Assembly: GCA_977030845.1 (NCBI GenBank)
Contig: OZ365113.1
Location: 31,372,001-31,436,000, forward strand
Reading direction: 5' to 3'
DNA length: 64,000 nt
Source: Fimbriosthenelais zetlandica
Taxonomy: Eukaryota
Both the position numbers and the translations under genes were made by a program. The notes under the pieces were generated by a model, which was not told where the DNA came from, ran no database searches, and saw only the letters and a list, made by a program, of their open reading frames with translations. Below, in pieces: positions 18,701 to 64,000 of this stretch (positions are counted from its first letter, which is position 1; the number at the start of each line of letters is the position of its first letter).

Positions 18701-19102
18701 GACACCCTTAAAATCTATATTTAGTCCAGGTCATTGAACTAACATTTAACCTTCATCTGTCACCAGAATGGTGGACTAATATTCTCTGAAACTGTTTGCA
18801 CTGCATTTTGTGTAAATATTCCCCAACACCAGGTGTAAAGGTGCGTTAAAAGAGGAAGGAAAATTATCTGGTGGTTCATGTTATAAGAGATAGATATGAT
18901 TCACACATATTAGGTACAATATCGTAACAATATTGGTCTGTGAATAGGCCCTAAAGATGAAATTCACATTACGCGGGCGTGTATTCATGCGCTCCGTTTC
19001 ATTAGTAGAGGTAGGATGCCAATATTGCTACGCCAATTATGTCGCCGAATAACAATGGGGTCCCAATTCGCCCTAGGACGAGTGCAGAACTCTTCCTCCT
19101 GC

Positions 19103-19219
19103 GCGCATGCTCACCGGAAGATAATGCCCAAAGCGAGGCTTTGGAGGGTCACATGGCCCAAGTCAGCCAATCAGCATCGTTTTTTCATTAATACCTAACA
19201 ATGGCTGGGGAGTGTGAGT
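19103..19219 (+). promoter_or_regulatory. Candidate proximal promoter (NRF1-like GCGCATGC, ETS CCGGAAG, NF-Y AGCCAATCAG) followed by a GTGAGT donor
   Basis: Motifs at 19103, 19114 and 19165, donor at 19214; about 1.8 kb upstream of the 21045 acceptor. Confidence 0.35.
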
Positions 19220-21045
19220 GTGGGTTCGGGTTAGGTTTGTGTCACGACACGTTGGAATCGTTCAAGCAATAACGTGATGTAGTCTGCTTTGAAACAAACA
19301 AAAAAACGTGCCAAATAGGAGATGTACGAGACCGAAACTGCCTTCCTTGGGCAGGCGAGAGCTGTATGAAAAGCTGTCCTCGCCGAGTCAATGTGAGGTG
19401 GGGAAGGATCCATCGCCGTCTGCCATATTCAATCAGCCATCCCCATGACCTCTGACAGACATTATTTCGATAGCACCGAGGAAATATCTGATAAAACTAA
19501 AATAATGAAGCCCAGGCCGGGCAGCGTGATGAGCTCCCGCCTGTGGCCACTGACTGGCTTTGAACACCCACCATGTCGGCTACTCAAGCTGCGTAATTTG
19601 TGGCTCATGGACCATACAAAAAGATGAGTTAATTTCACTCTGATGAAAGATACAAAATTGATTCTTTCTCCACCATATTTTTTCACTTTTAGCTGTGGGA
19701 AATATCTATATTACTATAGGTCTAATAATCGCATAAAAATTGGATGGACACATTCGAGTCTCATAATGCAGTGGAGGGTTAGGAGGAGTTGGAGATGGTT
19801 ATCTTTCTCCAGCTAGATATGTGCGTTGATTACTTTGTCCAATCACTGTAGTGAGTCTTCTCTGTGAACGTGATGCCTGCCCATGGGGAGTGCAGGAGGC
19901 CACCCTGGGACACGCCAAGTGGCATGAGCACCTCACGCACCACTCATTATGCCCAACTAGGCCAATGACAATCTTCTGCAATGTGATTAGTTGCGGCCAC
20001 CAACCCTGGCAATGTGTTGAATACCTGCATTTTACCACCTTTGTTTTACCTGTCCGCCATCTTCCATTCATCCATTATGTACCATACAATATCAATACAA
20101 TACGTTCATAAACAAAGCCTGCCAACAGCAGTCCTCCTCCAGCAACAGCAGCCAAGCCAAGCAAATAGTTTTCTTTTGACTATCATCATACACTAATTGT
20201 TTCACTTTTTTACTAATCAACCTCTGAAGGGGAAGATTTTTACTCCACTGGATGGCATTACCAATTATGTGGATTAAATTGAGCCTGCCATTTGTGAAGG
20301 AGTGGCAATGAGACTATTGCCTCGTCAGATTGCCAGAGGGGGGTAACAATGGCGGTGGAGCGGGGTTTTTTCTTGTTTGTCAAAGTGGAGGGATCGAAGA
20401 ATTAACGGTGTTCATTAAAAAAAAGAAAGAGCATGTCGTGATTCACTGGCGGGCCTGAATGGCGTTCAGAGGCAGTATCCTGTAACGTGTTCGCCAGCTT
20501 TGTTAAAGTGGTGGCGGCAGCATTTAATAGTTAAATGGCAGGCTACTGATTTGTTTTGTGATGTCTCTGTCTTGACAGTCATTAGGCCTGCTTGGGCTGG
20601 TGCTGCTGCCATGTTTGCACAACGTTAATTGGTAGAGGAGAGGCTGTTGCAGGCTCTGCTGTGACTCAGGATATAACCAAGTGAATGTAGCCCTCTGCAA
20701 TTGAATCATTCAAATACACTTTTGTGAGACTTATGTAAATTAGTGGCACTTTCGCTTGTGTCAATTTCTTTTGCCTTCTATAATTCACTGGTTCATATAT
20801 GTAACTGGTACAGTGGAACTTGTTCATACAAGAACTCGAGAAAAATCTTTTCAAATGAAGAACTTGCAATTTCCTGAATATAATGCATGTTTAGCTGATT
20901 CTGAAAGGTCTTTTGTAGAAAATCATTGCGTGCTTGAAGGGTTTATGCAATGATCCAATGTGCTCGTTCACTAGTGCATTTGTATTAAACTATGCCTAAG
21001 TCTTGGAGAGATGATTAAAAATGCCTTCCTTTTGTATCTTTGCAG

Positions 21046-21099
21046 ATTTAAAGATGCCCTTCTGACACGAGTGCTCCAGACGAGCGACTTCCTCTTGCC
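21046..21099 (+). other. 5' UTR part of the first coding exon, containing a minimal uORF (ATG CCC TTC TGA, 21054-21065)
   Basis: Strong acceptor at 21045, in-frame stop at 21049-21051, uORF read directly from the sequence. Confidence 0.75.
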
Positions 21100-24000
21100 A
21101 TGGAGGTAGCTCCATCACCACCCGTCATCCCTGAGTCTCTGAAGAAGATGGCGGAGTCTCTTTCAGGAGAGCCATCCTCCACTTCATTGACTCCCTCTGA
21201 CCCAGACGGCTGCAATAACAACAATAACAACGGTATAGGTACCCTGGGCTTGTTGGATAAAGCTGGGGCTACTGCTCTCCATGCACCTCCAAGCACAGAG
21301 GACCTAGCCACGCCCCCTCCCCCTACACTTCAGAATTCACCTCCTCCAGCCTCTCTACAAAATCATATCAACGGTACGCAGGAGGAGGAAGATGAGGATG
21401 AAGCTGATGATAGGGTGAACACACCACCAAACGTGCTTAATACTCATAGTACAGGGTCTGATACAGTGAACACACCACCTCAGATTATCATGGACACCGA
21501 TGACAGTCCATTGTTAGGAACGCCATCGTCATCGTCACATAATTTCAAAAGTGATGATAACCTAGGTACCTTACAAACTCAACAAAGTGGGGCGAACAGC
21601 CCGGCCTCATTGACCTCAGGTAGTGTATCACAACCTCTCACTCCAGGTAGCAGTTCTGTGAACAGGTCTCCCTCACAGAACAGCGCCAACCTGGAGCGGT
21701 CAGGCCCGAGGTCTGAGGAGGGAATCCAGTGTGGTGAATGTACCAAGGAGTTCAGTACCATGCAACAATACATGGGCCATAGCTGCTCCACTTCAGCTGC
21801 TGAGGTGCCACCTACAACCACCACCACCACAGCCAGCAAAACAGACACTGACATGACGACGAAAGAAGAGAATGAAGATTTGCTCAGTGAAGGGGAGAGT
21901 TTTGATGGGAAGATTGTCTATAATCCTGACGGCTCTGCTTATATAATTGAGGGAGAGTCGGACCTCAGTGACTCAGACTCTTTGATAGACTTGCCCCAAG
22001 TGGAGGGCAGTATAGTTGATCAACGAGGCAAAGTCAACACCTCAACTGTCCAGACTTTTCCTCAAATTGCAAATGCATTCTACATCCAAAGAAATCCTGC
22101 TGCCTTCTATAACACTTTTTACATGTTTCCACCTGAGAACAGGCCTCGTGTTGAGGCTCCAATCATGCACAGCTATCGTGTGTATGATCTTAGGTCAGCA
22201 AAAACCAAAGATAACAGAAGTATGCCTAACAACCAGGATGAGGAAAATGCCAGTATGGCCAGTTCGAAAGAGACCACTGAGGACGAGTGCAAACCACCTA
22301 AACTGAGAAAGATGGGATTTGGCCCCGGCCAGGAGGTGATGACGGTCCCAACAAAACCTATCCTTATGTGCTTCATCTGCAAACTCTCATTCGGATATGC
22401 CAAGTCTTTCGTTGCACATGCCATAGGTGAGCATGGGATGTCACTAAATGATAAAGAAAGAGAGATCATGTCTCTTAAGAATGCGTCTGCCATAATTCAA
22501 GGTGTTGGGAAAGACAAGGAGCCCCTGATGTCATTTCTAGAACCGAACTCTCCGCCCCAAGCGGGCCCGCTCAATGAGGACAGGTCAGGTGCTCAACCTT
22601 TCTTTCCACAAAATGTTTTTGCTAACAGTACGAGTAGTAATGTAGCTACAAGTACCACTAGTGTATCCCATGTATACCCCACTGCCAATAGTACCTCGAA
22701 GACAGAGCCCACTAGCAGTAATAACAGTTCATTCAAGTCATCTAATGACCTTGGATGTGATCCCTCAGTGGGCACTGCTCAAGATAATGTCTCGGAGATT
22801 GTTCTACAACAAGGTGCTAGTAATGCTGCTGATGTGCCATCTTTGTCAGAAATTGACAGCAACAAATGTAAACAGCAGCTTAAACTGCCAGATAGCAGCT
22901 ATCTGGTGAAATCTAAAGACAGTAACAGTGTGTGCAGCAGTCAGGATGGTGGAGATGCTCAAGGTGATCTTGACTCAGGTGCTATGGAGAAAAATAATCA
23001 CGAACACATGTCAAGGAGAAATGGTTCACCAAACACTGATCAGTACAGAGAGGCACTATCAAGAGTAGCTCCAAGTCCTCAGAGACCAGTTGGAAGTCCT
23101 GGACGAGCTACTCCTGGTATGGCGAGTAGTCCTAGAGCTACAACTCCCATGTCATCGGCAGCAATTACATCCGCTGCACAAGTACCAATACAGCAAGTTA
23201 TGTCCCAGAGATTACCATCCCCTAACTCCATGCCTGGTATGATTGTGAGAGGATGTGCGGATCATCCCAATGGCAATCCCGAAAACGATTGTGCCCAGTG
23301 TGATGTAGTTCTCCGGTCTCGCTCTCTTGGTGGCCATATGACCATGATGCACTCGCGGAACTCCTGCAAGACCCTCAAGTGTCCCAAGTGCAATTGGCAC
23401 TACAAGTACCAGGAGACTCTCGAGATCCACATGAAAGAGAAACATCCAGAGACAGACGCACAATGCATATACTGTATCGCAGGTCAGCCCCATCCACGGT
23501 TGGCTAGGGGTGAGGTTTACACCTGTGGATACAAGCCATATCGTTGTGATGTCTGCAACTACTCCACCACCACCAAAGGTAACCTTAGCATTCACATGCA
23601 GTCTGACAAGCACATCAACAACATCCAGGAGCTGCAGAATGGCAATGCTGAGATGAAGATGGCCCCGCAAGCACAAGGGGTGCAGCAGTCCCCTTTGCCG
23701 CAACATCCGCAACATCCGCAGCATCCGCAGCCCCAGATCCCCCAAAGTCCACTTTCACAAAGTCAGCAGGACATTCTGAAAAAGAACAAGCCCAAACCTA
23801 CCTGGCGCTGTGATGTTTGTAATTATGAGACCAATGTGGCCCGCAATCTGCGGATCCACATGACGAGCGAGAAGCACACGCACAACATGATGGTTCTGCA
23901 GCAAAATGTGAAACACATGCAGCGGGACATGCAGTTCCAGTTGGGTCAGATGGCTGTGATGGGCCATGACCCGACCATGCTGGGTATGACCTCCCCGCTC

Positions 24001-24820
24001 GCCCCTGGACTACCTCCATTTGGCTTGGAACAGGCCATGTTCATGCCGCCCATCCCTGGCATCGTGGAGATGCCCATGGACCTCACTAAAGAAAACAACT
24101 TCCCAAATACCTCAGCATTACCACTTGATCTGAAAGCAGCCGCTGCTGTCACGGCTGTTGCCACCAGTACAGAACCCTCCAAGATATTTCAGTGTTCCAT
24201 CTGTAATGTCTTCTCCTCAAACTCCTTAGAAGGTTTACACCAGCATATGCAGCTCGACAGGACAAAGGCTGTCAATAATGACAGTATTGCTGTCATGAAC
24301 GGCACATACCTGTGCAATCTTTGCACATACAAGACCAACCTCAAGGCTAACTTCCAGTTGCACTGCAAGACGGACAAGCATCTGCAGCGCCTTCAGCTCA
24401 TCAACCACATTCGGGAAGGAGGCGCCCAGAATGAATGGCGCCTTAAGTACATGAACATGTCCAACCCTGTCCAGGTGAAGTGCAACGCCTGTGACTATTA
24501 CACTAACAGCATACACAAGTTACAGCTTCACATGGCCAATACACGGCACGAGGCCAATGCTAAGCTCTTCAGACATCTCCAAAACTCTGAATCCAAGGTG
24601 TCTTCTGAGAAAAAGTACTACCACTGCGCTCTTTGTAATTTCTCGACCAAAGCCAAACTCAACCTCATCCAACATGTCCGTTCGATGAAACACATGCGGA
24701 ATGAGAGCATGAGACTCCTGCAACTCAAGGAACAGGGAAAGGAAGCTGAATACGACCTCGAAGAGATCTTCTGTGTCAAGGAATATTCTGATGCGGATGC
24801 CATCAACTTCGATGAAACTG
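21100..24820 (+). CDS. zfh2: First coding exon of a zinc finger homeobox protein of the zfh2/ZFHX3(ATBF1)/ZFHX4 family; homeodomains lie beyond the window
   Basis: The ORF carries family-diagnostic motifs: FDGKIVYNPDGSAYII, PIMHSYRVY, KPILMCFICKLSFG, LGGHMTMMHSRNSCKTLKCPKCNWHYKYQETLEIHMKEKHP, HPRLARGEVYTCGYKPYRCDVCNYSTTTKGNLSIHMQSDKH, WRCDVCNYETNVARNLRIHMTSEKH, YKTNLKANFQLHCKTDKH and KLNLIQHVRSMKH. Acceptor cttccttttgtatctttgcag ends at 21045 and is followed by an in-frame TAA, so ATG 21100 is the start. Donor ACTG|gtaagt at 24820/24821 is phase 1; the last ~19 codons of the listed ORF are intronic. Confidence 0.96.
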
Positions 24821-27800
24821 GTAAGTACAGCTTTTCCAAGATACAATGTTATACCAACTTTGTTTTCAACATTCTCTAATACATTGTTTTCTGGTTATTT
24901 AAAAAAAGTTTTAAAATAACTACTTGAAGCAACCAGGATGACGACAATTGAATGAAAAGACCGGAAGCAAGAGCTTCTGAAGGTTAATATTTACTTTGTC
25001 CGACTTCAGTTTTGCACTAAGGACAATTTATCATTATTCATAACTGCATTGAGCTCCAGGGAAATGTCTGAGTAACTTTCCTTTATATGACAAAGGACGG
25101 AGCCTGCCGGACGCATACTGCAGACACCACCGGTGGGTTTCATTAAACCCCGATGGAGACTATAAGAAATTCAATCTTAGTCCCTTCTAAAAAGTAATTT
25201 CAAGCCTCTTGAGATGATGGCAATTGTCAAGACTAACGGATGTAATTAGTGAGAGCCTGGAGAAGCCCGACAGGAGGGGCTCTTCACCTGGAGGAGGAAG
25301 TCTCCAGGTGAGGCTGGCCACTTCCGCTCCACACCTGAGCTCAGTCTCACTCTCACCCAGCTCGGGGATTGCTGGAGAAGAGACTGGAGAGTGAGAAGAC
25401 AAAGACTTAATGCATGCAAGTATGATGCACCTCCCTCAGTGAAGTTCCACGTCCTATGTGGATTAAATCACTTTCAGATATATGTCTTCTCTATCCACAA
25501 GACAAAACCCACTGTTAATTCAAAAGGGACACATGTATGATTCATGAATCCAACAAAGTTGAAAGTTGTTTTTTCCATTGTGTTGACTTTTGAATTAAGT
25601 GTTGGGATTATAACTTATTGATGGGATTTCCCATGTTTCCCAGAAAGGTTCTCTGTTTTAACATGGTTCCAATTAATACTAGGATGTGTAGGAAGGAACT
25701 CTTGCCCATTCCCACAGTGGATAGTCACTGTAATTAGAATCAGAAAAGTAAATGGATTTGTCCCGAAGGGAGGTTGGTCTACTGCATCAGCCCTCTGGAA
25801 TTCCTGTCAGTATTTTTTGGGGGGGCTGTACCAGAAAATGGAACCGACACACGATTAGATTACTCATATCGTGGGAAAAGGTCCAAACAAAAAAAAGATT
25901 ACAATGCCACTGTACGATGGAACTAATTATCTGTTGGCTGGTAAATGAAAAATAAACCACAACTATGTAGGCTTTCATATCATAAATGAGGCAATTGTCT
26001 TCATATTGAAATTAAAATTAAATTTAGTGCTTATCGAGCAAGGTATCATTTTTTTCAGCCTCGCCTCCACATATCAGACTTTAAGGCGTATCGGTGTCGA
26101 TAATAAGATTGCCTTCAGATCCTAATGTAAACAGTCAGATCTTTTTAAACATGAATGAATCCGTGTAGTGGCGCCAAGTCGGAGGTTCGGGGGATGTACA
26201 TAATGAAGGGAAATACATCCTGGCCAGCGTCAGAAATCCCGTGGGCGGATTATGTTATTCCTCTGTGGAGGGGACTATTTCCCATGATCATACAGCGGTG
26301 TTGCTTCTGACATCTTCTGCTAGTTTTGGCAAGGCAGTCCCACCAGAAAGCACCACTACCAAAACCACCAGCCATGTCCCACAGCTATTTGGCACTACGC
26401 TTTCCTAAATACCCATCCCCAGGGCTACCTTCACTATTTTCACCAAGGCAATCTTCATATTTACTTAATTTCCGTTCACTACCTTCCCCCCCCCCCCCCC
26501 ACCGTACTCCACTCCCCCTACATAGCCTTGTTCACAATGATATCTCGCCCATGGCTGGATACCTTGAAAAAGAGGACAATTCTATTTCAATTAAAATTAT
26601 TTTTTGAAAAATCAATTAGCATGGGTTTATTAGTGAGTGGTAAGGGGGGCTGTTGTCTGTAGTCTGAATGAAGTGATTGGGAGTGAACAAGGTTTGCACT
26701 TGAGGGAAGGTTAATGGCATGTGAGAGACGAGGACTAAATTTGGCCACAGGCTGTAAAGCTAATGGTAGAGTCTCTGTACTCTTTTGTAGCTAGCTTGTA
26801 CCTGCCATTGGCCAGAGGTGAAAAAATTGTCAACAGTCAAGGCTGACACTTGCTCTACATTTCCTGCCTGCCAAAATGTGTATATATGAGAAGGAACTGG
26901 ACAGAAAAAAGACGAAAGCCACTAAAAGGTTATGTGGTTATATATATTCCCAATTAGTTTTTACACGTGTGGGTTTTATTGAACACGAAGCTCCCTGTAT
27001 TGCTTCATTAGTTTTCCTCAGTTGAACACATTCTCAGTGTGCTTTTTTTATTTCCGGTTTGCAGGTAATGGGAAATGGAGAAATCCATAGTGAAAACCGG
27101 AATCTAATTAAATACCATTTCCCCCCTGAGTCTATTAACTCATCAGGAGCAATGGGTACGATAAGCAAAATGCAGAGACAGATTCAATGAGGCCTGTATT
27201 TGGACCCCTCCCCCAGCTACCAGCCAACCCAGGTGGGAGGGCCGGCCCTTCATACCCGCTATTGTTAATCCAAACTCTAACTTACGTTGTCATGGTTACG
27301 TCAGCTAATGACAATGGAGTGGATGATAATTCCAGGTATTTCCTCCTCCTTTCTGGCTACCCGACCAGCCAGCTTTAATTCAATTGCAATTTTCGTACGG
27401 GTAATAGTCCTTAATTTCCTACGTCTTGGAGGCAGGGGGGGGGGGGTCATTTTGTCTCATGCCCGCGTTAGCTTATAGTTGATGAGGCCGGGCTTCATTG
27501 AGAAAATTAATAAAAACTAATTTTAGAAAGGAAATTGATATCGATAGTAAGGATCATTTTACAGTATTACATTAATCGTAGGACCTGGAAGGAACTCTTT
27601 AATTTACGAAGCCATGATGAGCTAAATAAATCGATGTTCCAAAAATATAGGGCATCCGATGCCGTGAAAGTGTGTTGAACGAGGTATTAAAATTAATATA
27701 TTGTGGCCGAATAATACCTGCACTGAAACTTGCACAGCTTTCAGTTACACTTTTTCCAATATAATGCCATGCCACATTGTAACCGATTTAATCAAAAATT

Positions 27801-30800
27801 TCATATGAATATCGATGACTTGCATCATATTTTAACTCACAACTGAGTAACATGATGAAAATTTTAATATACTGAAATGCCATAAGAAAAACATTCCTCT
27901 AAAGCCCTGAGGTGTTTTTTGGGGGATGTGTGTGTGTTACCTGTGCATAGGTCACCAGCATGGAGTCAACTCGTGAGGAAACACCTGGGGTAACAAGGTC
28001 CTGCCCCCAGGCAAATAACCCATCCCCTCACTATAGCCCTTATTCACTGTCTGTCTTTGATGGACCGATAGCATCTGGCAGCCACTGCCCTCAATGGTTC
28101 GCCCAGGTAACTCGGTCTCTCTATCAACCAAATTAATTCCCATCTTACGTCATATGTGTCCAAGCAGTGTTAATTCTGTCGGATAATGACAATATTTGGT
28201 CACTCAAGTGGGCGGGGCAGTCATAAGTTGGGGACAGCTTGCCGGGGTAACCGACGCTATCGATGGCTCATTTACCTTGTCACGGTCTGGATGGGGAGAT
28301 CGTCCAACTATTGTCCACTAATTTTGACGTCCATCTTTGATAGCTGTACCTTCAATGACTTCACATTTGTGACCACCGTTCAGACATCGAGTATTAGGAA
28401 GATGCAATATGTTATGTGTAGGAAAGGAAGACAGACAATAGGCAATAGATAGTTCTGATTGTACCCAATCAGAACTAACTTTATTCTCAGCCTCAGACAC
28501 ATTGTCTGCTGATTAGGATCGCCCCTCTCCCTCCTGCCCGGCCATAATTTGAGATCTTAGAGATTTATGCTCTGTCTATGAGCTTTATCATTTCCAATAT
28601 GCTTCAAATAGGCCCCTGTAGGAATTTCTCCCCGAGGGTTACTATTAAGTAGCTATTGGTTTTAAATTAGTGGCATATTTCTGCCACCCCTTGGTCTCTC
28701 GGCTTGAAGCAAATGATGTGTATATCACAAAATTTGCTGGCAGGAGAAAATCTCTTTCAGTTTACCCGAGCTTTGCTTGCCACCCTGCACGACCATCTTC
28801 ATTTGTTTTGTCCCTCCATGCAATGTTCAACACTGCATCCAAACCACTGTTTTAATCCGCCTGCGAAAATTAGCTACGCCCAATCGCCCGCTGGCCCTCG
28901 TAAAAGTGACATGGGAGGGGAATATATTCGTCCTGGTGTAAGTAAGACTAATCCGGGTCGGATTTAGACTGGGCAAGGAGCGAGTTCAGCCAGTGGGAGC
29001 AATACCGGATTTCAGCCTGACCCGTTCAGATTAGCCACACGTTCGATACGGCCGTTTTCTTGGTGAGAATACGGAGATATGACGGGGAATAAAAGCGGGC
29101 TGGCTTGGGTGGCCATTTACATGCAGGGGTTGACATGGCAGGACTGAGGTGCATGTAGAAGAGAGAGGCAGCGCTCGTTAGTGCGGCGGATTAATCTCCA
29201 TGTTTATACTTGCCACCAAGCAATGCTGGATTGTTTGCCCGCCAAGAAGGCCTCCACCTCTCTCTGCTGACGTCCATTCAATCCCTCCCTTCCTTACCCA
29301 CTGTTTGGTGGACCTTCGAACTGACCAGAACATAATATTTCCTATTTTTTGCCCTCTGCGTTTAACATTGGTGACGGCAGGTGCTGTCATTTCCGCGTAG
29401 GAATGCGGTGTCAGAGGCCGCAGAGCCTGAAAGATGACACTGCATAAAAGCAGCTGATGATTTGTCGGCTATCATATTGCAGACATGCTTTCAAGTTTGA
29501 TTTTTCACATTATTGCCGCTGTTGTGGGGCGCACAAACAAGAGTGTAGGCGAGCTGAGGCCATCATTAAAGCGCCGAGGCAGCTCCCGTGAGCGAGGCAG
29601 TATTTACTTGGCGACCTTACTCTTTGTGACGACAGCCCTCTCCTATGTTTGGAGAGACTTCATCATGTGGAAATAGATGGGCCAAGAAACAAACACGATG
29701 CATTAGTAAAAGGAAACTCCAGCCGCCTCGCAAACAGAATATCAATATAGGGGGCGAGCATGGCCTCACCCCCCGCCTTTCACATAGATGACCCCTGATC
29801 TGAGGCAGGCTCTTCGCCTCACTTGGTCTATTCTCTCTGACGCTTTAACTTTGTCACACCTTGAACACAGTCTAAGACAAATTTCACAGGCCAGCGCACA
29901 AGAACAAGAACCCCGGCCTGCTATACGATCGCGGGGTATTATCTTAAGCCTAGCCGGGTTGGCGGGGTAGCCACTTCAGCCGGCATACCAGGCCAGGGCT
30001 TTGTTTTCCTTGTCTTAGCCCTGACATTATTTCACCTGAAACCATTTTGAAAACGCCAGTAGGGGCGCCCTCCATTCTGTCGGTTTGACTGCACTCTAAA
30101 GCTATTGTAATTAGTTTGAGTATTACAGGGTGAATCAGGGGGGCAAAGTGGGGGGTGAACCGACCTCCACCTCTATAGAAAAGGATCAGAATGGAGCTCA
30201 TTCCTCGAGACAGCAGGCCCCGATTGAAGTGTCATGAAATCCAGCCAGAACTTGGTGTTGTTACCCCGACAAAACTGTCTCGCTTAAACAGCTGGTTTTA
30301 TTTTGGCCATTGAATTGAGAAAACCTTCAAAGGTTTTCAATTGTGACCCATCACACTTGAAATATAAAGCTGAAATGCATTCAGTAACATTTTGAATCGA
30401 CAGTGTCACTATGCCATGTAGTTGTCGGTCGGTCATGGAAGTTTTACTTTATACCTTGCCATTGGGCCTTGAAATTGCTGCTAACAGTTGAGGTTGTAGT
30501 ATAAACCAAGTCATAAAAACAGGTCTAAAAGCTGGTTGTTGCCTCAGCACTGCCCCCGCGTGGACGCTCGGCTAACTACTGATCCGCCCTGTCAGGCCCC
30601 CAGCTTTAGATTGTTATGTCCTCAATATGGCCGGCCTTGGCTAAGTCTACACAGCCTCCTCCTGCAGGCAAGGACCCTCGTGGAAGGGGCTCTATATGAA
30701 TTCATGAGATAGTGAAGGGCCTGTCCTCCTTCCGCAGAGATAACCGCTCCGGGCAAGCCACTGAGAGGTCTCTTTTCGGATCAATACTGCCAAAGCCAGG

Positions 30801-48222: not shown

Positions 48223-51132
48223 ATGAAACACACATCCATCATGGCCTCTCTAGACATCCTCAATCAGACATATAATGGCAGAGGCGTCCATATTGCCCAT
48301 ATGAATATCCGCAGCTTATTCCCCAAAATAGACTCACTTCGCCAACTTGTTGAGGATAGTAAACTATCCATACTGACAATAAGTGAGACCTGGCTAAATA
48401 GCAATCTAGATAATAAATTAATTTCATTGAAAGATTTTACTCCATATAGGCTTGACAGATCATGGAATGAAGTCAATGCTTCCACTATTAAGAAAGGAGG
48501 TGGCCTCTGTACTTACATTAAAGCTCATTTTGATTCCAATAGTTTTAAATACAAGCATTTAAATAAAAGCTGTCAAGACATAGAAATCCAATGGGTTTCT
48601 TTTGAGCCTAAGCACCAAAAATCAATAATCATAGCGAACATCTACCGGCCTCCCAAAGGCAATATTAATAATTTTAACGAATACCTACATGACTGCTTAT
48701 CAAATGAAATCTGCAAAAATAAACAAATTATAGTACTTGGCGATTTTAACTTAGACTTTCTGTCCCACAGTAACTCGCAGATAAAAGAAACCAAAAATAA
48801 CCTACTGAAATTTGGCTTAAAGCAGCTGATAAAAGAACCTACTAGATACTCTCCAACTAAAAACTCACTACTAGATCCAATTTTTACAAACATTAATGAT
48901 ATATCAAACAGCGGAGTTGTCCACCCAGGACTGAGCGACCATGAACTACCATTTATCACTAAAAAAAAGCATCCCCTAATTAAGAATAATATTACCTTTA
49001 AAGGTAGACCATACAAAAACCTTGATTTAAACCTGCTAAAAAACGAACTTCTAGGGGAAGACTGGACCTTGCTATTTAACTCTAATGACCCTGAAACAAT
49101 CTGGAATATAATTGTTAATAAAATAACAAAAGTACTAGACAAATATTGCCCAATAAAAGAATATAAGATAAGTAAATGTAAAGAAGAATGGATTAGTGCA
49201 GATTTAATAAACGAAATCAACCGTAAAAATAAAGCACTAATAAAAGCTAAACGCACACGCACTACAGAAAATTGGATTATAGCCAGAAACCTCCGAAATA
49301 GCTGCATTAAACATATCCGCCATGCTAGAGCCCACTTCATTAAAGAACAGTTACATATACATAAGAATGATCCAAAGAAATTCTGGGCAAGCATAGCTTC
49401 CCTTATACCAACAAAAAAACAAAAAAGTGCAACGAACAATATAAACCTAATTGACCATACATGCAGCGACAGTCCAATTAGCTCTGATAGAACAGCCACG
49501 TATATTAACAATTTCTTTGCTAACATTGGACCCGAACTGGCCAAATGTTTCAAAGCTACCTGGTCATATTACGGACAAACAAATGATCAAATTCTACCGA
49601 TCTTAGAAACTAATAACACTGAAATAGGCGAATTAATATCTAAAATCGACACTAACAAATCATCTGGTATGGATTACATGTCCTCAAACATTCTGAAACA
49701 GAGCTTCTCTGTCATCATACCACAGCTTACCCATATGTACAACTCATCTTTCACTAAATGTACTTATCCCGATTCTTGGAAATTATCAACCATAGTCCCA
49801 TTACCCAAGGATGGGGATCCAACTGAAGTGTCTAACTACCGTCCAATAGCCCTTCTACCACTACCGGGGAAGATAGCCGAAAAAATAGTTCATAACCGTA
49901 TATATAACTTTTTTGAAAATAATGAAATCCTATCTAAATACCAAGGTGGTTTTAGAAAAAATCATTCAACTGTTAGCACAATAGCTGAACTTACAAATAA
50001 AATTTATATGGGGATGGATAATGGGAAACTTACAATGGCTGTGTTCATTGACTTGAAGAAAGCATTTGACACGGTGGACCATCATATATTATTAGAAAAA
50101 ATGTTCAAACTAGGGATCAGGGGTCCACCATGTCAATGGCTAGCAAGTTATTTGGAAAAGAGGACTCAAAGAACAGTTGCCAATGGCCAACTATCAACCA
50201 TAGCCCAAAGCACCTGCGGAGTGCCTCAAGGAAGCGTCCTAGGTCCACTATTCTTTCTAGCTTTTATTAATGATGCCCCTAACTGCATAACCCCAGCTAA
50301 TACACTTCTCTATGCGGATGACACTGTAATCTATAACCAGGGTGATAACCTGGTGGACATGTCCACCAGAATGCAAAATACATTAACACAATATTCCTCA
50401 TGGTGCACCCAAAACAAATTAACTATCAACACAAAAAAAACTAAGTACATGTTATTTGCCACCAAACAAAAGCTTAAAAACTCCCTTCACCCAACAATCA
50501 CACTGAATGAATCACCTTTAGAGCTAGTTAAATCATACAAATATTTAGGCATGAATCTTGACCCCCAATTATCCTTTACACCCCACCTCAACTCCCTAAT
50601 TCAAAAAGTTAGCCACAAAGCATACCAACTTTCCAAAATTCGCCCATTCATTGATAGCACCACCTCAAGCCTCATCTATAAATCAACCATACTCAGCTAC
50701 TTAGATTATGCTGATATAATTTACCATAAAGGACCTAAATCTCACACCAATAAATTACAGCGCATCCAAAACCATTGCTTAAGAACATGTCACTACCAAT
50801 ACCCTCCCCCATCCACCAACAATTTGCACAATATATACCAAGTTGGCTACCTTGAAGATAGACGGGAATCACATATACTTAACTTCTTTCATAAACAAAA
50901 ACATCTTCATCCAACCACTCAACAAACCTCTACTGTCACTCGCTCACAAGATACCACAACATATTCACTACCCAGACATCACACTGAAAAAGCTAAACAA
51001 AACCTAATGTACCACGGGAAAAAACTCTGGAATGAACAATCAGCAGAAATCCGAAATATAGAACAATATTCATGCTTTAAAGCTCAATCCAAAAGAAAAA
51101 TGTTAAATAAAATCCCACAACATAGAGGATAA
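48223..51132 (+). CDS. LINE ORF2-type protein (969 aa): apurinic-like endonuclease plus reverse transcriptase
   Basis: APE motifs: HMNIRSL, ISETWL, YRLDR..KKGGG, NIYRPP, LGDFN, QLIKEPTR, SDH. RT motifs: NYRPIALLP, QGGFRKNHST, VFIDLKKAFDTVDH, GVPQGSVLGP, YADDT, KYLG. The C-terminal LDYADIIY..LQRIQN is typical of CR1/L2-group elements. Confidence 0.96.
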   Translation: MKHTSIMASLDILNQTYNGRGVHIAHMNIRSLFPKIDSLRQLVEDSKLSILTISETWLNSNLDNKLISLKDFTPYRLDRSWNEVNASTIKKGGGLCTYIKAHFDSNSFKYKHLNKSCQDIEIQWVSFEPKHQKSIIIANIYRPPKGNINNFNEYLHDCLSNEICKNKQIIVLGDFNLDFLSHSNSQIKETKNNLLKFGLKQLIKEPTRYSPTKNSLLDPIFTNINDISNSGVVHPGLSDHELPFITKKKHPLIKNNITFKGRPYKNLDLNLLKNELLGEDWTLLFNSNDPETIWNIIVNKITKVLDKYCPIKEYKISKCKEEWISADLINEINRKNKALIKAKRTRTTENWIIARNLRNSCIKHIRHARAHFIKEQLHIHKNDPKKFWASIASLIPTKKQKSATNNINLIDHTCSDSPISSDRTATYINNFFANIGPELAKCFKATWSYYGQTNDQILPILETNNTEIGELISKIDTNKSSGMDYMSSNILKQSFSVIIPQLTHMYNSSFTKCTYPDSWKLSTIVPLPKDGDPTEVSNYRPIALLPLPGKIAEKIVHNRIYNFFENNEILSKYQGGFRKNHSTVSTIAELTNKIYMGMDNGKLTMAVFIDLKKAFDTVDHHILLEKMFKLGIRGPPCQWLASYLEKRTQRTVANGQLSTIAQSTCGVPQGSVLGPLFFLAFINDAPNCITPANTLLYADDTVIYNQGDNLVDMSTRMQNTLTQYSSWCTQNKLTINTKKTKYMLFATKQKLKNSLHPTITLNESPLELVKSYKYLGMNLDPQLSFTPHLNSLIQKVSHKAYQLSKIRPFIDSTTSSLIYKSTILSYLDYADIIYHKGPKSHTNKLQRIQNHCLRTCHYQYPPPSTNNLHNIYQVGYLEDRRESHILNFFHKQKHLHPTTQQTSTVTRSQDTTTYSLPRHHTEKAKQNLMYHGKKLWNEQSAEIRNIEQYSCFKAQSKRKMLNKIPQHRG

Positions 51133-55980: not shown

Positions 55981-57662
55981 ACAACACTGGAGTTTATTAT
56001 CAGCTATACCTTAACTACTATCACAGAGAATACAGCAATCATGGATCGAAGGTGAGATCTCTCTTCTTTACGTGTACAGTATGGATACAGCATCTGTCAG
56101 TGCGCTTATCAGTGGGTTATCTCTATCTCTAAACAGAGGGAGGATAGAGAGAGATAGCATGAAGCTATATACAGAGTGTGTGACCTCGTGCTCTCGGATC
56201 CTGACTAGTGTCTGGCTCTAGGCTCTTTAGTTATCTTCTAGGAGTACATGTAGGGAGTCACTATATAGAATTTCCCATTATTTCCAGGCTTTTTTCATTC
56301 TCATTCCACATGGTATTGACACCCATTCCTTCTGGCTTAATCGCCTGCCCAGCCCATTAAGCAGGGTGGAGGTGTATTGCTGCTAGCCCCCCTAGCCCTC
56401 TATATTAATGGGGGTTGTACCTTTGAGGGGCTAGCCCACCAGGACCCGGCGACAAGCAAATTGAGCCTTGATTGACCAACAAACACTACAGCCACCTGGT
56501 GTCAAACGGGATTATTAACATGTGCACATGCGTGAAATGTTCCATTACAGGAGAGCGACACATATTTGGCCCTATTTGTAAATTGCCAAAAACACCTTGT
56601 ATTTCCTTCTAACACCCAGGCCTCGCATCCAGTGCTTCCTATGAATATTCATATCTGATATTGGCAAACACAATCTGGATCCGCGAGGTCAAGGGGAATC
56701 TAGGAATAGTTGGCCTTACTATTAAAGTGTCGTCTCTAATAAGATATTGATTGAAGTGGTCTATTTCAATATCTTGCCACCATTTTAGTCATTAACTATT
56801 CAAGTCCACGTCGCACCTACCTGTCTACACCTTTCTAAATATATACTTTTCTATACTAATGATGTTGTCCCTACTGCTCTCTGTCTGGGAAGACTAGTGT
56901 TGTAAGCTTTATAACAAGATGGATGAGGTTTCTATGAATTACTTTACCCTATCTCTCCAAGTCTTAAATATTTCGCAGTAGTACCAATTGTCATATCATT
57001 GTAAAAAGCATTGTCCCCTTAAAACACACTGATTGCAAAAAAATATTCATTTTTAGAGTATCTTCATTCCGGATTCAGTGTATTGAATTGTGGTTATAAA
57101 TAGAAATGGCCTTTACATAAATACTTCATGCCTCAGTGGGATTGGCCTTTCATGATTCAGGTTTTCATAGTTAGGTATCAACATTTATGCAGAAAGATAT
57201 TTAATGGAGTTAGACAGGCGTACATGTTGCTCAGAAACCATTATTTAAACAAATCTTCTTCCAGGATATGGCGTTTACTATGGTAACCAAATGGCAAATC
57301 CCAGTCCTGGATTGTGTAACTGGATATCTATATCTCAACCATTCAGTAGTTCACCAGATAAGATATTTACATAACAAGAGAAACAGTTATCAGTCCATAG
57401 TGGCTACTGCTCCCCAGCTTCATCTGTAGTGAAACCATTAAAACATTTTCGCGGTGGAGCTATAGCTTGAAATCACCCATCACCCAGTTGACTTCCCACC
57501 ATGTTCTTACTGCCTTGTTTGGAGATTGGGGCCAAAAGTTGGTAGGGGGTAAACTCAGGTCGGCGTCCACCCCCTAATGAGTCAGTACCCTATAGGTCTG
57601 TCATTTAAAGACCCAGTACATTCTGCCAACCAAGTGAGCAGACTGACTTATCAACTGAGAAA

Positions 57663-58491
57663 ATGTCCACTGATTCAAATCCAGAAACAGTAAGGATGCT
57701 ACAGAGAACCTCAAGTGTCTGCATTACAACTAGTGAAAAGATGATGGTGCTGCGACTGATGGAATTCCTCAAAAAAAAGAATCCTAAAATCACCATAGAA
57801 AACCTTGTGAGAATGACCTCAAAGGCAACTGGAATGTCAGCTCTTTCAATATGGAAGATACGAATGGAAATGCAGGAAGATTCCAGCTCAGTATGCTCAT
57901 CCAGTATCAAGAAGACAAGTGAAGTTAAATTGAAAACAAATAGTGCTAAATATCATGATTCCAACGGATCTGTGAGAACAAATTCACTGCCAGATACTCC
58001 GAAGATATTTCAGAGACCCCCTGGTACGAGCATAACCAGTAATGAAAAGATATTGGTGCTACACTTAATAAATTTCTTCAGGGAAAAGAACCCCAGAACT
58101 ACAATAGAAAATCTGGTCAAAATGACTTCTAAGGCTACTGGTATATCAGTAACTTCTATATGGAGGATACGAAAGGAAAAACAGCAAGCGGGTAATGTGA
58201 AAGCAACTTGTGAAAGTAAACCTAATGGGGAGAAATTGAAAGTGATAAGTGATAAATACGAATGCATCAAACATGTAATAAGACACTTTCTGGGTGAATG
58301 TTTGAGAAAAGATGAAAGACCCAGCCTTAGGAGAATACACAAGCATGTTCAACAACAGAGCCAAACTGAAAAAGTGGCTTCCATTGGTTTGGAAGTTCTT
58401 CGTCGTCTCTTACTGGATATGGGCATTCGTTATAGGAGGGATGGCGTTATTATCGAGGGAGAGAACCTAGCAGAGAATGCGAAACATTCCT
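57663..58491 (+). CDS. Transposase-derived DNA-binding protein or exon (IS630-Tc1-mariner-like N-terminus): two tandem HTH modules plus a winged-helix-like module, no DDE domain
   Basis: Two ungapped 65-aa repeats (36/65 identical) of the form EK..VL.L..F....NP..TIENLV.MTSKATG.S..SIW.IR.E, followed by IRHFL...RKDERPSLRRI...VLRRLLLDMGIRYRR..VIIE. This matches my recollection of invertebrate Tc1-like transposase N-termini. The ORF stops at 58497-58499, but a GTGAGT donor starts at 58492. Family assignment is by pattern recognition, not a database search. Confidence 0.7.
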
Positions 58492-59756
58492 GTGAGTAGG
58501 ACGCATGTAACAGCATGGTTTTACAAGGATTCAATATTATCCCTGATTAGTAATGGAGATCCACACCTAGTATTAAGTGCATTATTTTACCCATACCGTT
58601 TGAGTTCAATGTATGTCCATCCTTCGAGATGGCCAACATTATAACGAACTCCATACCATGGAATGTCATATTAATGTCAAGGCTAAGATGCTGTACAGAT
58701 GTTTTCATGTTTTTCCATCCCCAAATATGGAATTTTAACCTTGTTTGGGATAGAAGCCATCTGAGCTTAATGTGGCAGTTATCCCTTGGGGATGCCTGAT
58801 TAAGCAACTAGCCCCCCTTCCCCCTCCCAACTCACAAACCCAGCAGGGATTGTTTGTGCCTTAAGAGTTCCCTCTCCAACCCATCCCCCATGCACCCACC
58901 AAGGCTGAGCCTTATGAAAAGATAAATAGCCAATAACCAAGTGCAATTATCGGCTCGATTGTAATTATCTTGATTGCTATGCATTGTTTCCTAGTGATCT
59001 ATAATACACCTGTTTTGACTTGTCATCTATGGGAGCCGGTTTTATGATGGATGTATCAGGCCTATGTAGGCTATCAATGGGAGCTTTGTTCTTCTTGTTT
59101 GCTATTAATTGGGGCTATAACCTCCAGCTCATTTGCTTATGATTAGGTTATTGGATTAACATATAACAACCCCTTAAAGTGGGTCCATCCATTCTCTACT
59201 ATAGCCTTGCTTATAAACAAGTGCCATGGAGCGTTTGTTTTCCATGTGTCACCATATGGAGTATTACATATATGCAATTAACTGTTAAAATGTGCCATTC
59301 GAGTATATTTATTTAACCCTAGGGGTTTTACCTCGTCGCATTTCAGCCAATATTTCCACGTATAGATTTGAGGGATGAACATATTTGGGATAAGTGTCCA
59401 TGGGATGTTTGTTTGCATTAATTGGACCTTCCCACAGATTCCCACGCCTACCAGTTTCAATACACCCAAACGGGTCAAATCCTGAGTAAGGAACCAACCA
59501 CCCCACCCCCCAGTACCACCCCCTACTTTCTACAGGATCGATCCATCGAACTATCAATATTTATTGAGAATAAGTGGACCAATCATCTCCCAACCCGTGG
59601 CTCGTATTTAATCACTATAGATTTGGTTCGTCCGTTTATTGAACCCCCGTGCCAGGCTACCCTGTGGTTAATTCCATATCACTAGAGCCTCAATACCTTG
59701 ATATAATCACAGAAAATGCCTAATACCCACCACCCCGGCCTGATCACAGGGCATGA

Positions 59757-59803
59757 ATGACAGTTCCAGGTGGAACTGTCAGAAATGACAGTTCCACTGT
59801 CAT
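59757..59803. repeat. Multi-arm inverted repeat built from TGACAGTTCCA
   Basis: TGACAGTTCCA gg TGGAACTGTCA gaaa TGACAGTTCCA CTGTCAT. Confidence 0.85.
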
Positions 59804-60340
59804 ACCTGGCTAGGGACGGCAGGGTGGGCTAGTCAGGCAGGATGGGTCACCCAGTGTAGCTATACTCTCTACCAGCTCCCTTCCCTAAATCCATACCATA
59901 CCGAGCCAATGGAGTGAACGTTAGTTGGTAAAGTGTATAGGTAGAGATGGATAGGAATCAAGGGTTTGTTGTATACCAACATTCCATGCACTACATTATT
60001 CAGTAGGCTAATATGGATTATATTTCTTATGAAACATGCCCCAGGTAGACCTATTTATGGATCTGACTTCATCGATACCGACACCCCACCTATCTCGAAC
60101 CATTCACTCCTCACAGTTCGACAACTATCACCCATCCTCGGCCTAACATGGCTGACCTGGTAGGGACCCGTTCTAAAGGCCTACACACCATAGGCAATGT
60201 ACCTATATTATTATTGCCCAGTCTCTAATGTGTGGCGCCATTGTTTGGTCCCGATCATTGCCGCTCCACCTTCACATTTGTTTTGACACACCTCCCGCTC
60301 ACCCGCGTAATCATTGAGCGCTAGGAGGGGGTAAAATTGA

Positions 60341-60510
60341 CATCCCTTCTCCCTTCCATCTCTCTCGATCGCTCGCTCCCCATCTCCCTCTGTCCCCTAT
60401 CTCTCTCACACTCCCTCCCATTTCTCTCGCTCCCTCCCATTTCTCTCTCCTCTCCCATCTCTGAGTCTCGCTCTCTCTCTCTCTCTCCCTCCCCTCTCTC
60501 TCTCACACTC
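60341..60510. repeat. Degenerate (CT)n polypyrimidine microsatellite
   Basis: About 170 nt consisting almost entirely of C and T. Confidence 0.85.
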
Positions 60511-62607
60511 CTCCCATTGCCAATATCGATTGCAAAGGGCGAGTATCGTTTGCATTGACAAAATTCACCATTATTATTTGATGGCCTCTAATGAAATGCA
60601 TCTAACGGGGCGGATGTAGCGGGCGGCCACGCGTTAATTCTGCCGCCAGGTGTCCTACTGTCAGATGCTATAACATGTCATAGTGGAGATCTATATTCTT
60701 TATTTCCCCAATATTTCATTTAAATATAACCAACAAGTTAGGAATAGATAACAGGATTGGCGAGGCACATTGGGATGGCTGCAGCATTCCAATTGAACGT
60801 TGCAGTCATTGATAAGGAGTTATACATGTAATATCAGGGGATGGATAGGATGGATATTATTAAAGTGGAGGGAGGCAGTGATGGTTGGAGTGTATCTGAT
60901 AAACTTATCTTAATCCATTATGATCAGTTTATAACCTGGATATATCTGTGAAGATTATTAGGAGATGGTGCATATTGTTATCTATTACCTAGCTTGGTCA
61001 CCACAACCCTGATAGGTTCTATTATCAACCAGTGGATCATTCCTAAAGTCCTAAACACCATTGACAAGCCAAGGTTTTCAACGTTTTTTAGTTACATGTA
61101 TTTAAACTGATTCTATACATATCTGATATGTCCGCCTTCATCAAATTTAATAGTTACAGCCAGGAAGTTCATATTTTATACAATATATATTTTTTTAAAT
61201 CCACATCCTCATTTATACAGTTTATAGCTGATAAAAAATATACGATCAATCTACTTCAGTGAATGTCATGACTTTTGCCATTTGGAGGTTAGGGAAATAG
61301 TGTATTTGTAGGCGGTTTGTGGGATGTGTGCATTGTGAAGGTTTACTGGGTCAGTTTGGACTCGGACATCTGTGCTGTCAGGATCCAATAGAGAGGATCA
61401 AGGGCAGCTGGTGTTGGAGATCAAAAAGGGATCCAAGTACTCCATGTGTACCATTTCTACCGCAGCTTACCATATAGAGAACAGCCTGGCCAGACGTAAT
61501 AGTCTACAGCCGGAAACCATTTGTTGCAATATATATGGCCTCACTCATTGATATTAATATCAGTTATTTTTGTCTTGTGTCAATACACAGATCATTGATA
61601 CATTAAAAATATATTAAGAACCTGGATATTTATTACATATATTTGAATTAATTATTTTCCATGGAGAATCATAGATCCTGTCAAAGGATGTTATCTCTCA
61701 GACTATGTTTTCTTCTTAGAGGTCTAGATCCTGCCTACCAATATACACATATTTATACAGTATGTATTCAGAATACATGTAAGCATGTAATATGACATAC
61801 ATAGGGTGTGGATACAGTCAGATACCTGTAGCTACCACCTACCACTGCTTCCCATCACACTATTATATGGCCCTGGCCATTGTCCCCAGTCCGACTGCAT
61901 GTAGCCTTAATTCTGTTTTGTTCAATCGCAATTAGACCCCCGCTCCGTCTATACATATTATGTTATATAGCCATGGGAAAGGTACATAAACGCGGGGCCT
62001 AATTGGACATTTGTTTGTTTATTTTTTCATAGGGGCAACCCTATTGAATACTGGGTAAATTTATGACCTTCTCCGCATACAGTGAATAGTTGTTACTGAA
62101 CTCAACCATTAGGGGGTCTGTCTGTGCAAGCTGGACAAAAAGAGAAACATAATTACATTGGATCCCTGTCGGATGCCTTTCTCAACAAACGATTTTGGTT
62201 ATGTCAGTTTTGATACGACCCGCCGCCCTATAATTCATTAGAGAGAGGGCGATTGTTTGAATTCTATAGATGAACAAGGGAGTGTTTTTACAAAGCATCC
62301 CTTGTGATGAATTACCACAAATAACCATTGATCTGTTTGTATTTATGATGTAATATATCATGAACATACCTTAAACCTGTTGCTGATATGCTATTTTTCA
62401 TAACGACTAGCCATCGCATCTGGCTCCATTTGACCTTTTCATTGTTACCATACCCTCGCTCTGCTACCATCAGTTTTTTTCTTGATCAATTATGTCATCT
62501 CTTGTCAGAAATGACCATTATTTTCCAATCATTTTCATTATTTTCCTTCCCTGGTTGATTTGAACATTTGATTTATTCCTTTGCCCCTTTTGTTTGTGCT
62601 TTTGTAG

Positions 62608-62706
62608 ATGGGGAGTCGGAGGTCCCAGATGGGATGGCCGAAGGGGATGCTAAACCACAGTTGGATCCGGCACTGCACGATGCCCTACTCCAACAGGCCT
62701 CAGCAG
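62608..62706 (+). CDS. zfh2: Probable next ZFHX coding exon, 99 nt, phase 1/1: (D)GESEVPDGMAEGDAKPQLDPALHDALLQQASA(G)
   Basis: Long pyrimidine tract plus TAG acceptor at 62607 and CAG|gtaaaa donor at 62706/62707. The length is a multiple of 3 and the frame is open when joined to the phase-1 donor at 24820. It encodes an acidic linker, similar in position to the short exon that follows the HVRSMKH finger in vertebrate ZFHX3 (from memory). Confidence 0.7.
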
Positions 62707-62758
62707 GTAAAAAGATATCAAATACTGAACACAAAATAAGTTAATAACCTTAAAATAC

Positions 62759-62850
62759 TCACTCACTCTCTGACTCAGTCACTCACTCATTCAGCACTCA
62801 TCTACCTACATTCACTCACACAATCATCTACTCTCGTATTCATACTCCAT
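62759..62850 (+). promoter_or_regulatory. YCAY cluster just downstream of the 99-nt exon (candidate NOVA/Pasilla splicing enhancer)
   Basis: Eleven YCAY tetramers in about 92 nt, starting about 50 nt after the donor. Confidence 0.4.
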
Positions 62851-64000
62851 TGCATTAATATTAAGCATTTCTGATATAAACTTGCACCCTTTCTAACAGA
62901 ACACTAATACAGCACTTTTTGATTGAGTAAATGTTTGTCATACAGTAATAATTGTTCGTATAATGTACAATACTCTATCCAGTAATCAGGATTGATTATA
63001 AAATGTCTGCTTATCAACACATAGGCCTACTAGTTATAAACCAATGACTCGCACCACAGATATAGCCTGCCCCTGCAATACCACACGCTTCCCACTTAGT
63101 CGCACTCCTACGCTTACATTTCCCTGTTATTTTCCGCTAGTATCCATAGCAATCGTAACACTCATATATGCTTAATGGTGTATATTATGTTATTCTATTC
63201 ATTTCGTTCTTCATTCTGCTTATATTCATGCATTTTAATTGCCTAGTATTTAACCTATTTTTTCCTGTCAAATAATCAGTTTCATGGATGATATCTATGA
63301 AAGGGCACACATTTTTTGTTAGATTTATTTAATTTTAGTCATTTAATATGGATGTAAACTCTATCTGGGGGATTTAAGCTGCTCGCTTCCCTATCGTTCC
63401 CATCTAGTTTCATTGGGGTCTCTCCTTCAATAATGTATTGAGAATGCCATAAGATCACAGCATGAGAGGTAGAGGCATAGCTATAATTGAAGTGGCTTCA
63501 TCTCCTCTATATAGTGGCTTAGATCATCACAATCAGACCAATGGTGATCGCCGGGCCTTGGATCACTTTTAATTTAGCCTCCAGGTTTTGGATCACAAAG
63601 GCCTGTAGTACGACTGAGGCTGATCGGGTTATACACTGGAAGGAGAGGGAGAAGGAGCTTTGCCAGCTCCTCCTGGGTGTCTCCTAACCCCATAATTACT
63701 ACTCCCACCTCCAGGGTGGAGAGACAATATAACCCCTTCAGCCGCCCCCCCCCCCCCTCCTCCCACCCCAGCCCCCAGTGTATAGGGGGCTCGACATTGG
63801 GGGTAATCCCCACTTGTGTCGTTAGCGCCATAGGTAGAGTTTTTCATCATTTCCCAGGCTTTTTTCTAAGTCTTAAGTGAAAAAGCAGGCCTGGGAATAT
63901 ATCTTAATTGCTCTACTGGGATATGTACATAGGTCATTATTGTCTGGTATTTTTGTATTAGTCGCCGATCACTGAGCAATCAATTGGAAAGATAAATGAA

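Follow-up and report, generated by a model that had tools for sequence, protein, structure and literature searches.

Does a transposase-derived open reading frame (ORF) in a long intron of a ZFHX gene serve that gene as an alternative first coding exon, or is it a transposase fragment that the gene does not need? This question is raised by a 64,000-nucleotide (nt) stretch of the Fimbriosthenelais zetlandica genome (contig OZ365113.1 of assembly GCA_977030845.1; this whole stretch is hereafter called the window), in which an earlier note, made from the letters alone, had proposed that a transposase exon is captured by ZFHX. We found that the ORF, judged by its homology, is the DNA-binding N-terminus of a Sailor/DD82E-type transposase of the IS630/Tc1/mariner superfamily, and we put at about one half the probability that the segment carrying it is a lineage-specific, immobile and probably young, inert transposase fragment.

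The identity of the ORF comes from its homologues. A phmmer search, run exhaustively against 1.8 billion cluster representatives, returned 55 proteins. The top match (P0001) was a tandem-repeat artefact and was set aside, while the remaining 54 had E-values from 4.6e-12 to 1e-3 at ~30% identity, and the matches aligned ORF residues ~110–261 to the homologues' own N-termini. Matches to the ORF in a tblastn search with 58 homologues were as strong as 9e-20, the homologues that carry names are beetle proteins (e.g., from Callosobruchus), and the Atlas neighbours of the ORF are helix-turn-helix (HTH) families of the IS630/Tc1 type. Four homologues (P0009, P0012, P0019, and P0031) run on into a DDE_3 domain, and 82 residues separate the second catalytic D from the E of the LNP(M/I)E (NP(I/M)E) motif in P0009 and P0012. 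Because this D-82-E spacing marks the Sailor (DD82E) superfamily of IS630-Tc1-mariner elements, whose reported hosts are invertebrates, among them Annelida, Mollusca, and Arthropoda, and which produces TATA target duplications (PMC8533490), we assign the ORF to the Sailor type. The earlier note had expected Pfam to recognize a Tc1/IS630 N-terminal HTH and had guessed at a DD82E Sailor-like origin: the first identity holds through the phmmer and tblastn homologues and the second fits the spacing just described, whereas Pfam itself returned nothing above threshold (HTH_Tnp_Tc3_2 was sub-threshold, with an E-value of 0.033). Neither a word-indexed protein search nor an exact-protein look-up with the ORF gave a match, a profile search against PDB sequences also gave none, and no protein more than 34% identical to the ORF was found among ~15 billion in a collection that includes the Logan contigs of a relative.

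Several homologues (P0003, P0004, P0007, and P0008/P0056) keep only the Sailor-type DNA-binding region. Three DNA-binding-only homologues continue into low-complexity tails rich in Q, P, and N, and a form of this kind with 271–273 amino acids (aa) is annotated in two Diabrotica species. Such proteins may be independent domestications of the same module in arthropods.

The catalytic half of the transposase is missing from the locus. Homology extends to ORF residue ~270 and no further: there, VIIEGENLAE lines up with the ILVEKxDI linker of the family just before the catalytic core, and the sequence 3′ of the ORF is dense with stops. In line with the earlier note, which had seen neither a DDE remnant nor terminal inverted repeats (TIRs), tblastn with the 58 homologues gave no other credible match in the window, and full-length DDE_3 homologues matched nothing at E < 0.02 outside the ORF in the window and nothing relevant on the (+) strand from 58500 to 62600. 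An extension of P0004 past the stop codon in these tblastn alignments was rejected as alignment noise. The best inverted match between the flanks of the ORF scored 21 (shuffle mean, 20; maximum, 30), a separate repeat search likewise found no TIRs, and the TATA sites at 57591 and 58640 enclose no TIRs. These searches show a DNA-binding-only and immobile transposase derivative: having neither TIRs nor a nuclease, the object cannot move.

What remains of the transposase has an unusual layout. An hmmsearch with a profile of the family's HTH1, from which the ORF had been left out, matched the ORF twice and each of the 58 homologues once, i.e., the duplicated first HTH is unique to the ORF and is carried by 0 of 58 homologues. 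The two copies differ by 1.2–1.4 substitutions per synonymous site (dS) and 0.27–0.35 per nonsynonymous site (dN), with a ratio (omega) of ~0.24. With dS above 1 and omega of ~0.24, the duplication is old, and both copies were kept under purifying selection. An AlphaFold2 model made from the family alignment (mean predicted local distance difference test [pLDDT] score, 79) contains three helical HTH-type domains (residues 23–75, 126–176, and 189–263) with disordered linkers between them, and in this model the layout is HTH1-HTH1′-HTH2. The best Foldseek matches were to the DNA-binding regions of TnsB/MuA transposases, DUX4, PAX paired domains, and SETMAR, all of them weak, owing to the flexible linkers (E ≥ 0.017; TM-score over the model ≤ 0.33).

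The features of the locus are collected in Table 1.

Table 1. Coordinates of the transposase-derived ORF, its domains and signals, and the flanking ZFHX exons (positions in the window)
Feature	Position	Strand	Details
ZFHX large N-terminal coding exon (exon 1)	21100–24820	+	1240 codons plus 1 base; donor GTAAGT after a final G, phase 1
Segment without a counterpart in organism A at ≥88% identity	57555–58756		Holds the ORF; between islands 57522–57554 and 58757–58808
In-frame TAA	57606–57608	+	19 codons 5′ of the ATG, bounding the open frame
Transposase-derived ORF, without catalytic domain	57663–58499	+	278 codons; sense to ZFHX, within the ~37.8-kb intron
HTH1 unit a (residues 17–73), extra lineage-specific copy	57711–57881	+	HTH1 profile 52.7 bits, 1e-16; three-helix bundle, pLDDT ~90
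HTH1 unit b (residues 118–177)	58014–58193	+	HTH1 profile 74.2 bits, 2e-23; pLDDT 94–98
Second (winged) HTH (residues 189–263)	58227–58451	+	Ends in the LLLDMGIRYRR motif common to the family; helices and two short strands in the model
GTGAGT donor-like hexamer	58492–58497	+	Phase 1, 5 nt before the TAG; sole GTRAGT in 57000–63000
Next ZFHX coding exon	62608–62706	+	99 nt; phase 1 in, phase 1 out; AG at 62606–62607 before, GT at 62707 after

The sense ORF of 278 codons that the earlier note placed in the ZFHX intron was recovered as described. A chance origin of the frame was rejected, the local composition giving a probability of ~2e-7 for 278 open codons; stops are dense in the surrounding intron, and, a long interspersed nuclear element (LINE) aside, this is the longest open frame in the intron. 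Its ATG has an A at position −3. The signals reported around it are likewise all present: the CTAAT motif at 57574–78, the AG dinucleotides ending at 57595 and 57610, the in-frame stop, and the phase-1 donor, which makes 58491 the last exonic base and the first base of codon 277, with the TAG stop at 58497–58499. The donor is compatible in frame with the ZFHX acceptor at 62608, which is also of phase 1, as is the donor of ZFHX exon 1. GTRAGT occurs 11 times in the whole intron, and the chance that a strong donor of the right phase falls within 10 nt of the stop is ~1e-3, before allowing for post hoc selection. Pyrimidine-rich acceptors 3′ of this donor are few (59536, 62033, and 62608). A cassette exon is ruled out, since an exon start at 57596, 57611, or 57617 would in no case keep ZFHX exon 1 in the frame of the ORF, and the first of these is additionally blocked by the TAA. 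With all candidate upstream acceptors out of frame and this stop in place, a first coding exon, as the earlier note argued, is the only frame-compatible way of using the ORF in ZFHX.

The host gene is assigned to ZFHX from its finger exon, the homeodomains lying beyond the window. The exon 1 frame starts at 21100 and runs for 1240 codons to 24819, with the splice site between 24820 and 24821. It encodes a ZFHX3-type C2H2 finger (Pfam PF24056, zf-C2H2_ZFHX3; E = 3.2e-16), and its protein matches include proteins named AT-binding transcription factor 1 and zinc finger homeobox protein 4. The closest protein, P0060 (92% identity), is encoded on a Logan DNA contig of a relative (L001), and the next-best named match is from Capitella. 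The end of the exon, ...INFDETG, is kept in relatives as ...(I/V)xF(D/E)(D/E)xG. At the next coding exon, both boundaries are used in a spliced transcript of another relative (organism B; see below), which bears out the acceptor at 62608 named by the earlier note. The intron between the two exons also holds, at 48223–51132 on the (+) strand and in sense, the intact 969-aa ORF2 of the LINE, with endonuclease and reverse transcriptase (RVT_1, 2e-39). CpG observed/expected ratios do not discriminate between these parts of the locus (ORF, 0.44; exon 1, 0.42; intron, 0.40–0.55).

Next, we compared the locus with those of relatives. Four sequencing runs were aligned to 57200–62800 at ≥88% identity, covering a relative's DNA, a single transcript contig from another relative, and a metatranscriptome; the runs found with the ZFHX exon as the query are from relatives. 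Organism A is ~95% identical in ZFHX exon 1 (estimated from a 0.19 share of 31-mers) and 95% identical across exon 62608–62706. Two of its single DNA contigs, X1 (8.3 kb) and X2 (19.5 kb), match the region in collinear islands of 88–95% identity at 57522–57554, 58757–58808, 58912–59026, 59132–59165, 59540–59625, 60541–60608, 61417–61449, 61970–62012, and 62600–62713, and no contig in either of the assemblies that contain X1 and X2 matches the ORF at ≥88%. An ORF under constraint (omega of ~0.24 at dS of ~0.17) would be expected to be ~93% identical to organism A and, hence, alignable. Since no alignment over the ORF was obtained, in organism A the ORF would be either missing or evolving no more slowly than the intron. 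The HTH1 duplication, we infer, long predates the divergence from organism A. When the 61-aa open frame that surrounds exon 62608–62706 was used as a protein query, no candidate from organism A was returned.

A second relative leads in the same direction. On L001, ZFHX exon 1 is 90% identical in DNA and its flanks are 71–84% identical, and ORFs as short as 41 aa were called on this contig; contigs of relatives are thus part of the protein collection, yet no match to the ORF exceeded 34%, which argues against an intact orthologue.

The transcript evidence comes from organism B. Its contig X5 (667 nt) matches 62606–62708 only and has unrelated sequence on both sides, which identifies it as a spliced transcript. 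The upstream exon in X5 ends in ...CCATGGAGCGAAG (...PGEIQQPWSE in the ZFHX frame), which is neither the end of the ORF nor the conserved end of exon 1, and it was not found in the 64-kb window. This difference means that, in a relative, an alternative upstream exon (though not this ORF) can be joined to exon 62608–62706, and it suggests that this clade has a further or alternative ZFHX exon upstream.

Some further observations concern the surroundings of the ORF. The short intronic islands from 58757 to 62012 are 88–93% identical to organism A, and the region around exon 1 (18288–30274, in L001) is 71–84% identical to the second relative over most of its length; these conserved islands fit putative conserved non-coding elements in the locus of a developmental regulator. 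Low-complexity CT-rich or CACT-type tracts at 60335–60511 and 62757–62793 draw most of the aligned contigs in all runs and also yield spurious ORFs of 60–90 aa on both strands. A 10-nt direct repeat, CCTTGTTTGG, brackets the ORF segment at 57513–57522 and 58739–58748, with a chance of ~0.06 for these flanks, and does not coincide with the points at which the alignment to organism A breaks (57554 and 58757).

The reading that we favour, a lineage-specific fragment, joins these results as follows. A Sailor-type bipartite HTH region with a duplicated first HTH, cut at the linker before the DDE domain, would have arrived in the ZFHX intron in this lineage. As the duplication is older than the split from organism A and the ORF is not visible in organism A, selection most likely acted over that long time at another place, within a transposon or gene lineage, and the copy seen here is probably young. 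The intactness of a young arrival needs no selection at the ZFHX locus, i.e., the ORF would be open because it is young and not because ZFHX needs it. The GTGAGT at 58492 may be the donor of the first exon of the source transposase gene itself, in which case its phase match with ZFHX is a 1-in-3 event, or it may be a coincidence (~1e-3). If the segment is transcribed, a 278-aa protein with three HTH domains could be made by read-through to the TAG, or splicing could proceed onward from the donor.

Several points weigh against this reading. By our estimate, an ORF of 834 nt would stay open neutrally only for ~2% divergence or less. A young canonical insertion would be expected to retain its TIRs, target site duplication, and entire catalytic half, and their loss here is odd; the 10-nt direct repeat is the only trace seen. 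A strong donor stands exactly where the homology ends and in the phase of ZFHX, for which the chance is ~1e-3. No AATAAA or ATTAAA occurs within 2 kb 3′ of the stop of the ORF, so that the end of a stand-alone transcript is not obvious. Finally, the comparison with organism A does not separate absence of the ORF from divergence below 88%, as the letters between 57554 and 58757 were not reported.

The first alternative is a stand-alone nested gene, in which a domesticated 278-aa DNA-binding protein with three HTH domains would be expressed from its own promoter in the ZFHX intron, unrelated to ZFHX splicing. The intact ORF with its three confidently folded domains, the purifying selection on both HTH1 copies since their duplication, the A at −3 of the ATG, and the existence of DNA-binding-only relatives annotated in two Diabrotica species, as well as of proteins that join such a domain to a Q/P-rich tail, all speak for such a gene. 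We nevertheless regard it as unlikely, because the ORF is undetectable at the orthologous site of a close relative (at ≥88%), has no close homologue in the protein collections searched, and is followed by no canonical poly(A) signal within 2 kb, while the signal of selection may date from the transposon phase.

The second alternative is the fusion proposed by the earlier note, which we consider a distinctly doubtful candidate: an alternative first coding exon of ZFHX, very young or confined to this lineage, with the transposase placed first. Here, transcription from an intronic promoter 5′ of 57663 would be followed by splicing of 58491 to 62608, and the ~1240-aa zinc-finger N-terminus would be replaced by three transposase HTH domains ahead of the downstream part of ZFHX. 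Parts of this proposal stand, namely the identity of the ORF, the loss of the catalytic domain, and the frame compatibility. Both splice sites are of phase 1; the final codons of the ORF carry the only GTRAGT within 6 kb, and downstream of it just three decent acceptors occur, 62608 among them. The ORF has stayed intact where the remainder of the element has been lost, and the lack of a canonical poly(A) signal after the stop would also suit an exon that is spliced onward. The transcript of organism B, in which exon 62608–62706 is joined to an exon other than exon 1, adds that alternative upstream exons exist at this gene. Other parts are not supported: the 58491-to-62608 junction occurs in no read or contig of the four aligned runs (relatives' DNA and transcript, metatranscriptome), and a search of RNA runs with the ORF as the query matched no run. 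Upstream of the ORF, there is neither a CpG-island promoter signal (observed/expected ratio, 0.2–0.3) nor any other promoter signal, and the ORF segment is unseen in organism A at ≥88%, in contrast to the 95% identity of the ZFHX exon. Moreover, eight of nine documented captures use an acceptor 5′ of the transposase ORF, with the host domains N-terminal (10.1101/2020.05.07.082677), whereas every upstream acceptor here is out of frame. A literature search for ZFHX together with transposase or domestication returned no relevant report. The comparative sequence evidence therefore leans against capture, which we treat as a possibility and not as a finding.

The weakest alternative, that the ORF is the first exon of a spliced multi-exon transposase gene with its other exons elsewhere or too diverged, in an element that is larger and possibly complete, would explain why the donor sits exactly at the linker between the DNA-binding and catalytic domains with the stop two codons into the putative intron, but it is very improbable given that full-length DDE_3 homologues found nothing else at E < 0.02 in the window, that these homologues are contiguous ORFs, and that the flanking islands (57522–57554 and from 58757 onward) are orthologous host intron, leaving ≤1.2 kb for the element.

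As it stands, the fragment is a well-characterized case of a common thing: a long intron holding what is left of a DNA transposon, its DNA-binding part alone. Of modest interest are the tandem duplication of HTH1, which is unique to the lineage and was kept under purifying selection, and the signs that Sailor derivatives reduced to the DNA-binding region recur across several animal lineages. Should the fusion prove true, the locus would offer an invertebrate transposase capture at or near its birth, with the rare transposase-first polarity, in a deeply conserved developmental transcription factor.

Compared with known systems, the ORF resembles Sailor (DD82E) elements (PMC8533490) in that its HTH1 unit b and HTH2 are homologous to the N-terminal DNA-binding region of D-82-E DDE_3 transposases; in contrast to them, it lacks the catalytic domain, the TIRs, and the TATA target duplication, carries an extra HTH1 unit, and is only ~30% identical to any known member. 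Host-transposase fusions form the second point of comparison. At least 94 capture events have been described in tetrapods, typically with an acceptor just 5′ of the transposase ORF, N-terminal host domains, and purifying selection across species (10.1101/2020.05.07.082677). Like SETMAR, PGBD3-CSB, KRABINER, and the other fusions of that study, the locus described here combines a sense transposase DNA-binding domain in the intron of a host transcription factor gene with a frame-keeping splice site; unlike the known cases, which are mostly host-first via an acceptor, its ORF would become N-terminal via a donor and would need its own promoter, and of the features of such fusions it displays frame compatibility only. 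Finally, the bipartite paired-type HTH of Tc3, Mos1, SETMAR, and the PAX paired domain shares with the ORF helical sub-domains joined by a linker, and PAX, SETMAR, MuA/TnsB, and DUX4 are its best, if in every case weak, fold matches, but the model of the ORF has three such sub-domains as opposed to two.

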